From Dimorphilus gyrociliatus (Eukaryota > Animalia > Annelida), in assembly GCA_904063045.1 (NCBI GenBank), contig CAJFCJ010000001.1, positions 806,001 through 870,000 of the forward strand: DNA of 64,000 nucleotides, given 5' to 3'. Shown here piece by piece: positions 18,567 to 25,505 of the stretch (positions within the stretch are counted from its first letter, which is position 1; each line of letters starts with the position of its first letter). The notes under the pieces are model-generated. The model did no database searches and was not told the origin of the DNA. It saw only the letters and a program-made list of their open reading frames with translations. Both the position numbers and the translations under genes were made by a program.

Positions 18567-20066
18567 TTAACGATCTATAAATTTGAACTTGGGCGTTACT
18601 TTAGGCATATTAATCATTCTTTGAACTTGTATCATATCCTCATAATGATACTCTACAGTAAAATTTTGCAAAATCTTTATTAGACCCAAATAGAGCTCTT
18701 GTTGGGCAAATCTTCTTCCAATACAAGCTCTTGCCCCATAACCAAAATTTAATACGGCGAATGGGTGTATTTTTTCACTTTCGTTATTGTTCCTTAGCCA
18801 CCTTTCGGGAATGAACTTTTCTGGTTCGGGAAAGTATTCTTTCAACTTCCCTGCAACGCTATTGTGAGTAAAGACGTTTGCACCTTTTTTAACGAGGTAG
18901 CCTGAAAGCAAAACATCAGCTGTTAAAGTTCGCATTGTGCCTTCAACCGTTGGCAGAACTCTAGCTGTTTCTTTTTCGACGGCTTTTAAATAGGTCATTT
19001 TATCGATTGCTTCTGGAAGGACTGGCTGACCCTTTGGAGCGAATTGTTGTATTTCTGCAAAAAGTTTCTCTTGTTTGTCAGGATTTTTGGCTAACAGATA
19101 AAGCGCGAATGCTATAGTATGAGCAGTTGTATCTACTCCTGCCAGGAGGAAATCAGAGACTAAAACAAGTACCTCGTTCTTGTTTAAATCGGAAGATGTC
19201 AACAAGTACAATAATAGAGACAAGCCATCCTCTCTCGCTGCCCTTGTCGAATCAATAGCTTGTCGACCGGCCGAAGTCATTAGAGAATTATTTACGTACT
19301 TCATCGATATACTCCACAACTTTTCCATGCATTCCATTGCCGTTCTGTATGTTTTTGTTTTAAGTCTTTTGTGAAATGGCCAGGCCAATTGGCAGCGAAT
19401 TAAAGATTCAAAGAACTTTCCAACGTTTCTAATAAATTCATCAGCTTCTAAATCAGTTCCACTAATTACTCCTATTCTAGTATCAAAGCAAACAATTCCA
19501 ATCGATTCCATAGCCCACCTATAGAACTCTTGCAAGCAATCTTCTACTTCTCCATCCTCATTTCTAACAAATCGAATTTTACTAACCATATCTTCTGCAA
19601 CTGATTCCATTGCTCCAAGATAGGCAGAAACCGATCTAGGTCTCATCATTTTTGTTTGGGCTTTCATTCGTAAATCATACCAAGCTTCACCATTTAGATT
19701 AGTCAAACCTACTGGTAGATCGTTGTCTTTTCTATATTTCAGCATAGCCTCGAACGGAAATCTATGCGGAAACTTTCCATCGTATTTCGAAACAACTCTA
19801 ACGTCGTCAGGGTCGAAGACATGAACCATAGTTAAACCTGGAAAAATTTCCTCCCGAACAAGCCGTCCGTACTTTTGATACTTTTTTACAGATGCATCTG
19901 CCCATTCGTTAAGCTTATATTCACCAAATATTGGCAGATACTTGTAAGAACTGCCAATAAATGGAAGGCTTCTTGGTCCAGGAATTTCGGACATAGGCTT
20001 TCCAACAATTGTGCCAACATCTGAAAGAGATTTTCCTAAGTTTGCTACTTTTTTCATTGCTGTCAT
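18567..20066 (-). CDS. Cytochrome P450, mitochondrial clan (CYP12/49/301/302-like), intronless CDS, 499 aa
   Basis: IPGPRSLPFIG N-terminal motif, I-helix AGVDTT, KETAR (ExxR), PERW, heme motif FGYGARACIGRRFAQQE. Confidence 0.93.
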   Translation of the reverse strand: MTAMKKVANLGKSLSDVGTIVGKPMSEIPGPRSLPFIGSSYKYLPIFGEYKLNEWADASVKKYQKYGRLVREEIFPGLTMVHVFDPDDVRVVSKYDGKFPHRFPFEAMLKYRKDNDLPVGLTNLNGEAWYDLRMKAQTKMMRPRSVSAYLGAMESVAEDMVSKIRFVRNEDGEVEDCLQEFYRWAMESIGIVCFDTRIGVISGTDLEADEFIRNVGKFFESLIRCQLAWPFHKRLKTKTYRTAMECMEKLWSISMKYVNNSLMTSAGRQAIDSTRAAREDGLSLLLYLLTSSDLNKNEVLVLVSDFLLAGVDTTAHTIAFALYLLAKNPDKQEKLFAEIQQFAPKGQPVLPEAIDKMTYLKAVEKETARVLPTVEGTMRTLTADVLLSGYLVKKGANVFTHNSVAGKLKEYFPEPEKFIPERWLRNNNESEKIHPFAVLNFGYGARACIGRRFAQQELYLGLIKILQNFTVEYHYEDMIQVQRMINMPKVTPKFKFIDR

Positions 20067-20880: not shown

Positions 20881-23684
20881 TTAGATTGAAAATAATGTGT
20901 TAATAAATATGGAAACAGTTTCTGACACTTCAATTGTACCACAACGAATCTTAATACTCCATATACATCTACCATCCGTCCTCTTAGCAGTTTTTTCACA
21001 CTCTATTAAACAACCACTAGTTGTTTTTTTGGGAATATTTTCGAATAAGCTAGCTGCTCTAATTGTATGTTCTGTTGAATGTTTTACCCATGATTCCCAA
21101 TGATGATCCAACTGAAAAGATTATTTTTTGATATTTATTCGGACGGATAAGAACCTTAATCTTATATTTGATATGAATACCTTTTCTTTAAGTGTGGATA
21201 ATGAATCTGTAGTTATTGTTAAGATTCTTTCTGTATGGTAAAAATCAGACCATCTCTTATCGTACAAGTCATCAATGCTCTTAACTGTTGGATCCCTTAT
21301 GGCATCCAGAACAAAATCTGTCTTTTTCAACCTTTTACTTATATCTGCAACTTTAAGTACTTGTCGAAAAGATTCTTCCGGTTTATAGATCAAGTTCGAA
21401 CTGGCCCTCTCAAGGAGAATGTTCTCTGTAAAGTTAGAGGGAAAGGAGGCAATTAACTGATAGTACTCAACAGCTCTCTGTTGAACTTCCGTATTAAGAT
21501 TTTTAATTAACATTTCATCATTTAAAATCTACAAGAATTATCTCGATTAGTTGATTTAATAAGATAAAGAAAGCTAGAAAATTGAACTTATTAAAACATT
21601 TATAATACGCCATACATTTAGAACTTCAACTTTGATATTAGTATGAAGTTGGGCAATCTTGACAAATGCTGACAGCATAATAGACTTAGTCTCTTCGTCG
21701 GATTGATAAAATCTATTCCTGAGACAGTCAATTTGTTCCCGACCACTTGTGAATAGGATATGTAAAAAAAAAAAGTAACTACGTTTGAAACCGGAAACAT
21801 ATATAAGAGATATCAAAAGAAAAGAAAACAATTCAACTATCTAGCCTCTAAAATTCAGGATGAACTTGGCATACCTAGCTATCAAGTAGCCATATTCCCC
21901 AATTATAAAAGAGCACATTCTCAATAGTACGCTGCTGGGGTTCGATTTCCTATTTAGCAGGTTAAAAGCGACTGCAGCTACCTTTTTCTAAAAGGTTATA
22001 CACTCTTAGAATTATTGTTATTAGAAAGTTTATGTCACTTAGGCATATATACTACCTGAAAAAATGGCTTTTCCCGAATTAATTTTACTAATTTAAACCA
22101 ACAAGAGCTGCTAATGACGTCACCAGCAATCGAAATTAGATTCATAAGAGCAGGGGCGTATTGTTCTACATCTTTCTCTCCGCCATCGATTACAAACAGT
22201 ATCTATTTGGGATGTATTAACTTATACAATACAATAATAGATAGATGCATTATTAACAGGATAAAAAAAGGAAGTTTACCTTATTAACAAGCTCTTGTCT
22301 CAAGCTAAATTGACTAATACGAGGCAGAAATAATATCATTTTCCAAATTACATCCCATCTAAAAAAATCTCCAGGAAAGGAACAAATTATATCTAGAATT
22401 TTTATAATTGTTTCTAAATTATCATGATTACAGGGTATCATTTGAAGTTTTTTCAAAAATTCATACGAATACAATTGTAATTTATTCGAAATTCCCTTCG
22501 ATCCTATTAAAATTCGAACTAAATCAATACCAATATAGTAGAGGTTAGACGTTTTGTTTTCCAATAGATAATTAATTCCAGTACAGACTTTGTTCATTAG
22601 TTGATTATTTTGCTCAATATTTACAAATAGCTGTTGTTTTTTTTTTTATTTTTTTCGGTTTTAATGAATAATTTAATTCGTTTGACAAAATATATTAATA
22701 ATTAATAGAAATTAATTAATTTAAATATATATATATATAAAGTATATAAAACCGTTTTTATTCAATTAATCTATACATACCAACCTTAACAGCCTCTTGG
22801 AAAATAGATATTTTAATATTAGTTTCAATAAACGTAACGTTGGGTTTCGTTTCTATAGATTTTTCAATTGCATACTCAATAAGATTCGTAATATTTTCTC
22901 TTAATTGAATTCTATTCAATAAATTGAATAGTTGAACTATTAACCATGGAGCGCAAAAACCTCCGTACATATATTGATTGAAATTATTATTAGTTTTCAT
23001 TAATTTATCTAATTTTGATATAATTAAATACTGAAATGATGAAATTGTTTGTAATTGATTTTTGTCGTTAGTTAAATATATGAGTAGTGTAACTGAAGAT
23101 TGAACCAATCCTAGGTTATCATTATCAATAATCATAAATAAGTAAGGTATTTCTTTTTCTAAAATTACTGGATAGTTGTTTCCCTCCCTAAGGAAACTTA
23201 TCAAACCTAGGATAGAGGATTGTCTTACTGAATCACAATTTCCCTCGTTCTTCATGACAGATACTAACTGATTTGTAAACAAATCAGCCATCTCTGGTCC
23301 ACCTATATTACATAGACAAGCTAGAGCCAATTTTTGAATTGCTGGACGATTACTATGTAGATCTCTTTTTATACATTCAACAGCCAGCAGTAAATAATCT
23401 TCCCTACTTGGAAAAGTGCTTAAAAACAAATAACCAATTCTCTTATCAGAATAGTTCGTGGACGATATTAGGCTTAAGGCTTCCATTTGTCCAAAATCTA
23501 CTTTTTCACCCTTAAGGAAAATATAAACCAGTTTACAAACATATTTTCGTTTATCGTACAAAGATTTATTGCGTTTTAAAAATTTTTTTCGAATATTCGC
23601 AAGCTCTTTTGAGATTCTGATCCTTTCCTCATCTTCATTCCTACAAGATCTAAGCTCCTCTATAAACGTTTTTAAGCCACGCAT
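20881..23684 (-). CDS. AP2A-like: Diverged, shortened AP-2 complex alpha-adaptin paralog (7 exons, ~745 aa)
   Basis: MRGLKTFIEELRSC...ISKELANIRKKF...KRKYVCKLVYIFLKGEKVDFGQMEA; APWL; NLYYIG; ISIAGDVISSSCW; IIGEYGYLIA; QQRAVEY; C-terminal KRW...GCLIECE...SIKIR matches the alpha-ear platform. In-phase GT-AG introns connect the exons. Confidence 0.85.
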
Positions 23685-23829
23685 AACCTTTTCTTATTTA
23701 AATCCTATTAGATAAAATTTAAGTCATTCATTTCTAAATAGAATGTATTGATACAATTTCAAATGATAATTCGTAACGTTTCTTAATCGGTTTGTACCAC
23801 TTTTTTTCTAACAAACAGAAAAAAAATTC

Positions 23830-25505
23830 TACTATTCTCGAGTCTTATTGATTTTTCGCCTTTTTCTTTCTTCGCCTTTTCCATTGCCTCTTCACTTTCT
23901 TTTGTAATAAGCCAACTTTTTCTGGACATATTAGAGTGACGGATGATAAGAAAAGACTTAAGAGAAGGAATATATAAAACTCACTTTTTAATATCCAGCT
24001 TATCTCGTAGGGTTTTTGCGTGTAAGGTTTCCGCTTGTAGAAGGGATAAAATTTCACTTTCTCGTAGCGTATACTCCAAATATCGTTGTGGGTAAAAAGC
24101 TTCCAGGCATTACTCCAGAGGAAGACGTACTCGTGTAATTAATCTAATCATTCCTTAACTAAATTAATAAACCATAAATCCCCCTCATATATAGACCTAT
24201 CAATCTTGTAATCCTTACATTTATAGACGTTTACTCGCCGACTTCTACCGGGCAAAAGTACACAATGTAAATAGGTAAGAGTTATTATGTATCCCATTCA
24301 AAAATAGTCCTGATAGTTGCTATACCAATGCAGAAAATTCCTGATAAATACAAGTAAATATGCATGAGTCCATATAAATTGAATATTACCATTGAAGATA
24401 AACAAAGAAAATCAAAGAGATTTCAGCAAATCCAGCTGCGATCGGAGAAGCGGATATACTTAGACGTCTTCCCATTCGTCCAATTAAATATATTCCTACG
24501 AGTTAGTGATTAACCATAACTGAAGAAAGGATGTATTGTCCTTCTCTCCTATTTATCCATGATCAGCTAGAGTACTTCAACAGTTTCTGATAGAACTGTA
24601 GAGAGATAATATTTCCACTTAACAAACCAACAACCCAAAATATATTAAACAGCAGCTAAACCTTTGGCGATATATTCAATTTAAAAGAAAACTAATAAAA
24701 GTAACGAAGGATATTTGCGGATAATCTCAACCAAATAAAAGTTTAAATGATTTTCTCCTCCCTTAGTGGCTGTGATAAGTATAAATCTAGGACGATTCTC
24801 TTCTAACGCCCTTTAAGTGATCACAACTAGTCTCATCAAATTTAATGCCCTTGGACAATGTTGTATTGTTGATAGAGGCCATTTTTCTTGGTACCCTGTG
24901 GGCTTCGAATCTTCTACCTTGACTGATCAATCAAAGCGAGGAGTCTTCTGTTATACTTTTCAAGCATTGATTAATCATTTCGAGACGAATATCCTATGAA
25001 CGTTGTTGGATAATTGATGGAGTAGCAGTATCTAATTGTAATCTGAAGAGATCCCGTAGAAAAAAAGCAATACCTAGAAGTATAGCATGACCGAAGACAT
25101 ATAACATCCTCCAGATACGACCAGCAGCTGCCTTATAATCCCTACGGATTATCTTACAAAACTGTAATGCAAATAAGAAATATTTTATTTCAAAAGATAA
25201 GACATGGATTAAAATGAGTAGTTGTTCTGGATAAACTAAAAAACAAATCCCCTCTAATATATACGCAACTGAACTGTTTCCTGCAGCTATGACATCTAAT
25301 AGAATACGATCCAAACAAAATGTTACTTAATTGTGAGAAAGCATTTGTTTAAACGAATTTTAATCCATAAATAAAAAGACTTTGTAGTTTCTCTTCGTTT
25401 TCTATCAGAAAGGATGGCGGAAGATAATGATCCAATAACTCTTTCTAGCATATAGACTACCGACGTAAATTGCACTATCTATCCTAGACAGCAAACAGGA
25501 TTCTA
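23830..25505 (-). pseudogene. Decayed SLC22 / organic cation transporter-like MFS pseudogene
   Basis: Collinear SLC22 motifs across several frames with stops and frameshifts: NPVC..VYML..IGSL..AILSDR.RR; RILLDVIAAG..VAYIL; YKAAAG..LYVFGHAILLGIAFFLRD...LQL; TEDSSL*LISQGRRFEA..KMASIN (PESPRW with W changed to TGA at 24931-24933); LIGRMGRR; LLSLFLSSVTLICPE. Confidence 0.8.

Follow-up and report, generated by a model that had tools for sequence, protein, structure and literature searches.

AP-2 alpha-adaptin is normally a very conserved endocytosis protein in animals, with a hinge of ~80-100 residues between its trunk and its appendage (or ear), and accessory proteins of endocytosis are gathered by two hubs, of which this appendage is one. 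To our knowledge, the two-lobed form of the alpha appendage is constant in animals apart from the gene described here, which lies on the minus strand at 23684-20881 of a 64,000-nt window of Dimorphilus gyrociliatus DNA (contig CAJFCJ010000001.1, positions 806,001-870,000; the window is this whole stretch, and all coordinates are window coordinates). An earlier note, made from the letters alone, had read this gene as a fast-evolving alpha-adaptin paralog in which the platform lobe of the ear remains and the hinge and the beta-sandwich lobe have gone. Of the two lobes, the sandwich carries a site for WxxF-type motifs, whereas DP[FW] and FxDxF motifs bind to the platform, at a site centred on W840 (PMC5694535). 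AP-4 beta4 has a platform sub-domain only (PMC1540706), and in the Myzozoa the ear of alpha-adaptin is degenerate, while a separate protein (KAE) carries the conserved alpha ear (PMC10105704). Human cells whose alpha-adaptin lacks the appendage form pits that are flat and short-lived (Aguet et al. 2013, as cited in PMC7192580). In C. elegans, alpha/sigma2 hemicomplexes are able to act alone, according to PMC3591783.

Like canonical AP-2 alpha (AP2A1/AP2A2; PDB 2VGL for the trunk, 1W80 for the appendage), the worm protein is predicted to have a full-length alpha-type trunk with K57/Y58, R21 and the QQRAVEY end of the solenoid, followed by a C-terminal platform-like domain that keeps the W840 Trp, E907, R920 and the length after this Trp. 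It differs from canonical alpha in its identity of ~35%, against the 50-65% or more that is normal among animals, in a hinge of ~27 residues, in the absence of the sandwich with its WxxF side site, in the loss of the DPNP loop, in the replacement of F837, R905 and R916, and in an ear that is unseen by Pfam. Like the beta4 appendage of AP-4 (PDB 2MJ7), its ear would be single-lobed and platform-only; beta4 is, however, the beta-type subunit of an ancient, separate complex, whereas the worm case appears to be a recent reduction in an alpha-type subunit, with a much shorter linker. As in the Myzozoa, where this has been read as a split of alpha functions, the worm ear is predicted to lack canonical WxxF binding, but the myzozoan ear is degenerate and still present. 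The worm, an animal, has physically lost the sandwich, and is not known to have a KAE-like partner. The engineered ear-less mammalian alpha-adaptin is likewise a trunk without full accessory-protein recruitment (as predicted for the worm), and provides a functional expectation of short-lived, flat pits on replacement of the wild type. That construct is artificial and has lost its whole appendage, whereas natural selection acts on the worm protein, in which a modified platform remains. In the literature, no animal (or Dimorphilus) alpha-adaptin with a deleted sandwich and hinge was found described. The platform-only ear is new for an alpha subunit; as concepts, both an ear of this kind (AP-4 beta4) and a degenerate alpha ear (Myzozoa) were already known.

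The locus holds a transcribed, lineage-restricted gene of alpha-adaptin descent, seen in D. gyrociliatus and one related species only. As judged from the sequence, this gene encodes a complete alpha-type trunk, a linker of ~27 residues and a single-lobed appendage homologous to the platform alone. That the product is a functional platform-only alpha-adaptin, serving as a specialised AP-2-like adaptor, is on balance the explanation that we favour, with some reserve.

The hinge and the beta-sandwich subdomain (~200 residues) are deleted, and are absent from the gene, its transcript and the window, bearing out what the earlier note had proposed. The distance from QQRAVEY to KRW is 68 residues, versus 281 in the canonical 965-residue isoform, and the residues after the KRW Trp number 99 in the worm protein versus 98 in the canonical isoform. 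Analyses requiring a joined sequence used the annotated database protein (P0001, 661 residues), whereas a longer model of 739 codons, described below, was searched exon by exon. Pfam Alpha_adaptinC2, which a canonical control (P0004) matched at 3e-24, had no match in P0001 at expectation values (E) up to 10. A sandwich profile of our own gave noise only, in the direct profile search as in hhalign, and a six-frame scan of the 64-kb window (2698 open pieces) found no sandwich-like coding piece near the gene. The RNA evidence consists of contigs from one public run, and contigs give no proportions. In these contigs exon 6 is continuous, with QQRAVEY and KRW together, and is joined straight to exon 7, and no extra exon restoring the hinge or the sandwich, as the earlier note had allowed for, was found among those of the adaptin locus. 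There is no room for hidden exons, because the six introns, in 5' to 3' order, are only 154, 77, 68, 129, 87 and 69 nt long.

Since standard searches failed to recognise the tail, platform and sandwich profiles were built from 119 diverse alpha appendages. The platform profile matches the D. gyrociliatus tail with an E of 2.5e-4 (one target). In a separate search it matches the second species' exon 7 with an E of 1e-3, at the same profile positions as the D. gyrociliatus tail. When a two-species profile of exon 7 was compared by hhalign with the platform, it aligned to columns 62-117 (Prob 78.7, P 1.7e-5) with a score of 28.9, ~8 standard deviations above the mean of 150 column shuffles (mean 10.1, standard deviation 2.3, maximum 20.7). 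With realignment, the tail is collinear from end to end with platform columns 5-117, and against the whole appendage it aligns to the platform half only. In a MAFFT alignment with 55 canonical platforms, the KRW Trp falls on the only invariant column of the 58 sequences, which is W840. Exon 7 is also the best platform-profile match among the 2698 six-frame pieces of the window. A fold prediction made with canonical rows in its alignment reached a pLDDT (predicted local distance difference test score) of 82 with an alpha/beta topology, and in an exhaustive structural comparison the best matches of this model among 48,161 chains were the platform of the beta2 appendage (Z 10.5), that of the alpha appendage (1W80 residues 829-938; Z 9.8 over 103 residues, with a root-mean-square deviation of 2.8) and the platform-only AP-4 beta4 ear (Z 9.5). 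By the profile comparisons, the tail is homologous to the platform subdomain of the alpha appendage, remotely but with statistical significance, and keeps the W840 Trp.

Canonical platform columns that are kept in both species are F825, F836 (as Y or F), R839, W840, G901, L903, E907 and R920. Other conserved platform positions are changed in both species, with F837 becoming D, R905 becoming E and R916 becoming S or N, and the DPNP loop is lost. We take F837, R905 and R916, from structural papers, to have roles in the platform site. The notion that the platform had been kept thus holds for the alignment of the tail and for the position of its Trp on W840; it does not hold for these three residues, nor was the domain visible to Pfam.

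The trunk identifies the gene as an alpha-adaptin. Pfam Adaptin_N is matched by exon 1 alone (3e-37) and by P0001 (7e-55), and among PDB sequences exon 1 is closest to AP2A2 (4.8e-49, 170 bits), ahead of AP-1 gamma (1.2e-24, 90 bits), AP-4 epsilon (7e-12, 48 bits) and AP-3 delta (9e-11, 45 bits). In a maximum-likelihood tree with a gamma outgroup, the worm gene and its relative in the second species fall within the metazoan alpha clade with support of 100/100. A gamma, delta or epsilon identity, which the earlier note had considered, was rejected on the PDB scores and on this tree, in which the gamma sequences form the outgroup clade (100/100). The stem of the worm gene and its relative measures 2.07 substitutions per site, the median terminal branch being 0.39; the tree does not settle where inside the Metazoa they belong, and no trust should be put in their weak association with other long branches. 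Exon 1 is 35% identical to vertebrate AP2A, whereas the same vertebrate protein is 65% identical to a rotifer and a tick-like copy, 53-60% to acanthocephalans and 50% to Intoshia, demonstrating the marked divergence that the earlier note had claimed.

Despite this divergence the membrane-facing residues persist. In the alignment to AP2A2, R11, N39, K43, Y53, K57, Y58, K61 and R21 are all matched by identical D. gyrociliatus residues. We take R11, N39, K43, Y53 and K61 to be further residues of the phosphatidylinositol 4,5-bisphosphate (PIP2) site of alpha, and R21 presumably contacts dileucine signals. The double mutant K57E/Y58E is a published PIP2-minus form of alpha (PMC7192580). In the second species, N39 is replaced by H and K43 by I, whereas the other PIP2-site residues and R21 are kept, including K57/Y58 and the KYVCK motif, so that the retention of PIP2-binding residues proposed earlier extends, at K57/Y58 and KYVCK, to both species.

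Several other divergent alpha-adaptins were encountered. A 1032-residue protein from an AT-rich organism (P0013, on contig L004 of run DRR671605), with a trunk ~50% identical to vertebrate AP2A, was tried as a relative of the worm gene, with which it shares KYVCKLVYIF and MEALSL, and was rejected, as it neither groups with the worm gene in the tree nor shares derived residues with it in excess. Five alpha-adaptins from Logan contigs (P0165, P0022, P0168, P0015 and P0167), full-length but strongly diverged at 36-45% identity to vertebrate AP2A, form a tight clade, whose weak grouping with the worm gene is probably an effect of long-branch attraction. Alpha-like adaptins of ~700-820 residues from protist or metagenome data (P0175, P0201, P0207, P0212, P0369 and P0373-P0375) are without precomputed ear domains; outside animals, alpha subunits with a degenerate ear or none may be more widespread.

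The second species was entered through a 312-residue Logan protein (P0002) that is 70% identical to exon 1, and is represented by genomic contigs (L001-L003) of runs SRR23372216, SRR23372228 and SRR23372229. In both species the adaptin gene is followed by a P450 gene. In the ortholog on L001, all seven exons are open, the six intron positions are identical and the stop lies at the equivalent place, while the amino-acid identity to D. gyrociliatus is 55-76% per exon. By the Nei-Gojobori method, the adaptin genes differ by 0.227 nonsynonymous (dN) and 1.06 synonymous (dS) substitutions per site, a dN/dS of 0.21 (0.14 for exon 1 and 0.55 for exon 7), ratios that are rough because dS is near saturation. 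The adjacent, intronless P450 gene has a dN of 0.062, a dS of 1.17 and a dN/dS of 0.05, so that the adaptin dN is ~3.7 times that of its neighbour. The open exons and the dN/dS of 0.21 indicate that the gene is under purifying selection, odd tail included. By these comparisons the adaptin gene changes far faster than AP2A normally does, yet is constrained. Among 1.84 billion representative proteins searched, no further orthologs were found.

The gene is transcribed. Four of the six splice joints (E2/E3, E3/E4, E4/E5 and E6/E7; Table 1) are present exactly in RNA contigs, and these spliced contigs, together with the dN/dS of 0.21, speak against the silent, neutrally drifting locus that the earlier note had envisaged as an alternative. 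RNA depth over the adaptin gene is ~7-25 and patchy, compared with 95-120 for the upstream neighbour transcript, and this low, patchy coverage fits a copy that is not a housekeeping gene.

A number of results nevertheless weigh against a functional platform-only alpha-adaptin. Pfam Alpha_adaptin_C (PF02296) had no match in P0001 at E up to 10 (control P0004, 1e-45); when the last two exons were used as queries against the PDB, as sequences or as a profile, nothing relevant was returned, leaving the platform undetected; and a look-alike search of the ESM Atlas with exon 7 gave no usable match. AlphaFold, when given the C-terminal 192 residues and an alignment of the two species only, produced an unusable model (pLDDT 42). 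The model with a pLDDT of 82 leaned on canonical rows, and therefore shows compatibility only and no independent proof; in Foldseek against the PDB it gave weak, mixed alpha/beta matches, with the alpha appendage not among the best 50 matches listed and the beta2 appendage at rank 29 (TM 0.54). The blanks in Pfam and the PDB, the poor two-species model and the Foldseek ranking would suit a lineage-specific tail of another fold, in which the likeness of the C-terminal 110 residues to a platform (the Trp, GCL..E and a basic strand) had arisen by chance. Such a chance likeness is improbable in view of an hhalign score that none of the 150 shuffles reached, the agreement of two separately searched species on the same profile positions, the collinear, end-to-end alignment with its near-identical length after the Trp, and the rank of exon 7 above all other pieces of the window. 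On the side of transcription, the sole RNA contig that crosses intron 5 retains it (continuous over 21181-21747), which would yield a truncated product, and RNA cover is lacking over the E1/E2 joint and over the greater part of exon 1; the roughness of the dN/dS ratios belongs here as well. Intron 4 (21746-21874) is spliced in one RNA contig and retained in a second, and the retention of introns 4 and 5 could reflect regulated intron retention or weak splicing. These retained introns, the low expression and the raised dN/dS of the last exon could alternatively be signs of a decaying or non-functional duplicate, with mostly unproductive transcripts and a protein that is inert if made. This reading is very improbable, as two species at a dS of ~1 share the same intron positions and have kept all seven exons open, with a pooled dN/dS far below 1, and as other introns are precisely spliced in the same contigs.

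It also counts against the favoured explanation that no second D. gyrociliatus alpha-adaptin was found among the word-sharing candidates scored, which were few with the annotated protein as query and 186 in a search restricted to residues 1-135. With a canonical AP2A query, the best 120 of 4307 matches were all vertebrate, with no D. gyrociliatus entry among the matches listed. Two invertebrate-looking N-terminal fragments, examined as candidates for a D. gyrociliatus AP2A, were traced to marine metagenomes. Taken at face value, this blank, the position of the gene inside the metazoan alpha clade and the retention of K57/Y58 and R21 would be accounted for if the worm gene were the only alpha-adaptin of dinophilid annelids, a true AP2A ortholog that is extremely diverged and has lost its hinge and sandwich. 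The animal would then run clathrin endocytosis at the plasma membrane with an alpha subunit that is nearly hingeless, has no WxxF site and carries a re-charged platform pocket, and its endocytic accessory network would have been rewired wholesale. However, the word-based searches were unable to reveal a canonical copy. Moreover, ~31% of exon 1 has changed between two related species, at the dN relative to P450 given above, which is hard to square with the conservation of AP2A elsewhere, and the RNA coverage is low and patchy. A sole ortholog is therefore unlikely, and on the grounds of rate and expression the worm gene is probably a paralog beside a canonical AP2A.

If the product is a functional platform-only alpha-adaptin, it would take the alpha position beside sigma, and probably beta and mu, subunits, either in an AP-2-like complex or in an alpha/sigma hemicomplex. 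Its site of action would be the PIP2-rich plasma membrane, the N-terminal region having kept K57/Y58 and R21. Because the sandwich site is gone, WxxF-type accessory proteins would not be bound, and because the central Trp is kept and F837, R905 and R916 are changed, the accessory proteins recruited by the platform may be fewer or different ones. With the hinge nearly absent, the reach of the ear from the core would be short. Most likely, the protein would serve as a specialised or modulating adaptor, as an extra copy alongside canonical AP2A.

The gene model on which this rests has seven exons and 739 codons in an open frame, with all six introns GT..AG (Table 1), and was derived from a reading of splice sites and from comparison with the second species. 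It upholds the seven-exon frame read in the earlier note, and the motifs quoted there (MRGL, IRKKF, KRKYVCK, QQRAVEY, KRW, GCLIECE and SIKIR) are all present and aligned with the corresponding motifs of AP2A2. The surrounding DNA is AT-rich (~30% G+C). In the public annotation the gene is DgyrCDS182 (CAD5110819.1, UniProt A0A7I8V537), an uncharacterised protein identical to P0001, whose first 300 residues are 100% identical to exon 1. The public model agrees with the 739-codon model except that exon 1 is joined to a point inside exon 2 (start ~22391), by which 78 codons are missing. The longer exon 2 was taken as correct because the skipped codons (22392-22630, minus strand) are open, are conserved in L001 and lie within an unbroken RNA contig; DgyrCDS182, which omits these 78 conserved residues, is probably an annotation error or the record of a minor isoform. 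With intron 5 removed, the spacing from exon 5 to QQRAVEY equals that of canonical AP2A without a gap, as read from the sequence, and the homologous intron of L001 is 90 nt long and also contains a stop. The RNA contig that retains intron 5 has the next intron spliced out. Hardly any intergenic space is left upstream of the adaptin gene, a possible sign of transcription by read-through or in an operon-like unit.

Table 1. Parts of the adaptin gene and its two neighbours in the window (RNA, as seen in RNA contigs; identities are to the L001 ortholog)
Feature	Position	Strand	Description	Evidence and conservation
Exon 1	23684-22785	minus	300 codons, ATG at 23684; N-terminal alpha-adaptin trunk; K47/Y48 = K57/Y58 of AP2A2 (PIP2 site), R12 = R21 of AP2A2	Pfam Adaptin_N 3.1e-37; 69% identical; dN/dS 0.14
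Exon 2	22630-22280	minus	117 codons; trunk	RNA contig unbroken over 22280-22612
Exon 3	22202-22056	minus	49 codons; trunk	Joints 22280/22202 (E2/E3) and 22056/21987 (E3/E4) in RNA; 63% identical
Exon 4	21987-21875	minus	113 nt; trunk	Joint 21875/21745 (E4/E5) in RNA; 76% identical
Exon 5	21745-21616	minus	130 nt; trunk	74% identical, same boundaries
Intron 5	21615-21529	minus	87 nt, GT..AG	In-frame stop 21576-21574 if retained
Exon 6, whole	21528-21181	minus	Holds both QQRAVEY and KRW	Joint 21181/21111 (E6/E7) in RNA
Exon 6, first 40 codons	21528-21409	minus	Last trunk helices, including QQRAVEY	Motif and spacing fit canonical AP2A; almost invariant in L001
Exon 6, codons 41-77	21408-21298	minus	Short linker in place of ~80-residue hinge and ~120-residue sandwich subdomain	
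Exon 6, codons 78-116	21297-21181	minus	N-terminal part of platform-like domain; KRW Trp is W562 of P0001	Trp on W840 column; conserved in L001
Exon 7	21111-20884; stop 20883-20881	minus	76 codons and stop; C-terminal half of platform-like domain (GCLIECE, IWSIKIR, C-terminal helix)	
P450 gene, directly downstream	18567-20066	minus	499 residues	Pfam p450 1.7e-80; L001:7108-8598, 89% identical
Strongly covered upstream transcript	23776-24100	minus	Intron 23984-23922; ends within ~100 bases of adaptin start codon	RNA depth 95-120

The worm gene would represent a natural experiment, in which the membrane- and cargo-facing core of an alpha-adaptin has been kept and a modified platform lobe placed on a very short tether. 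It could reveal which contacts of the ear are dispensable, and what use is made of an "ear-poor" AP-2-like adaptor, for instance in one sex, at a particular stage of life, in a specialised type of cell, or in the tuning of pit maturation through competition for shared subunits.

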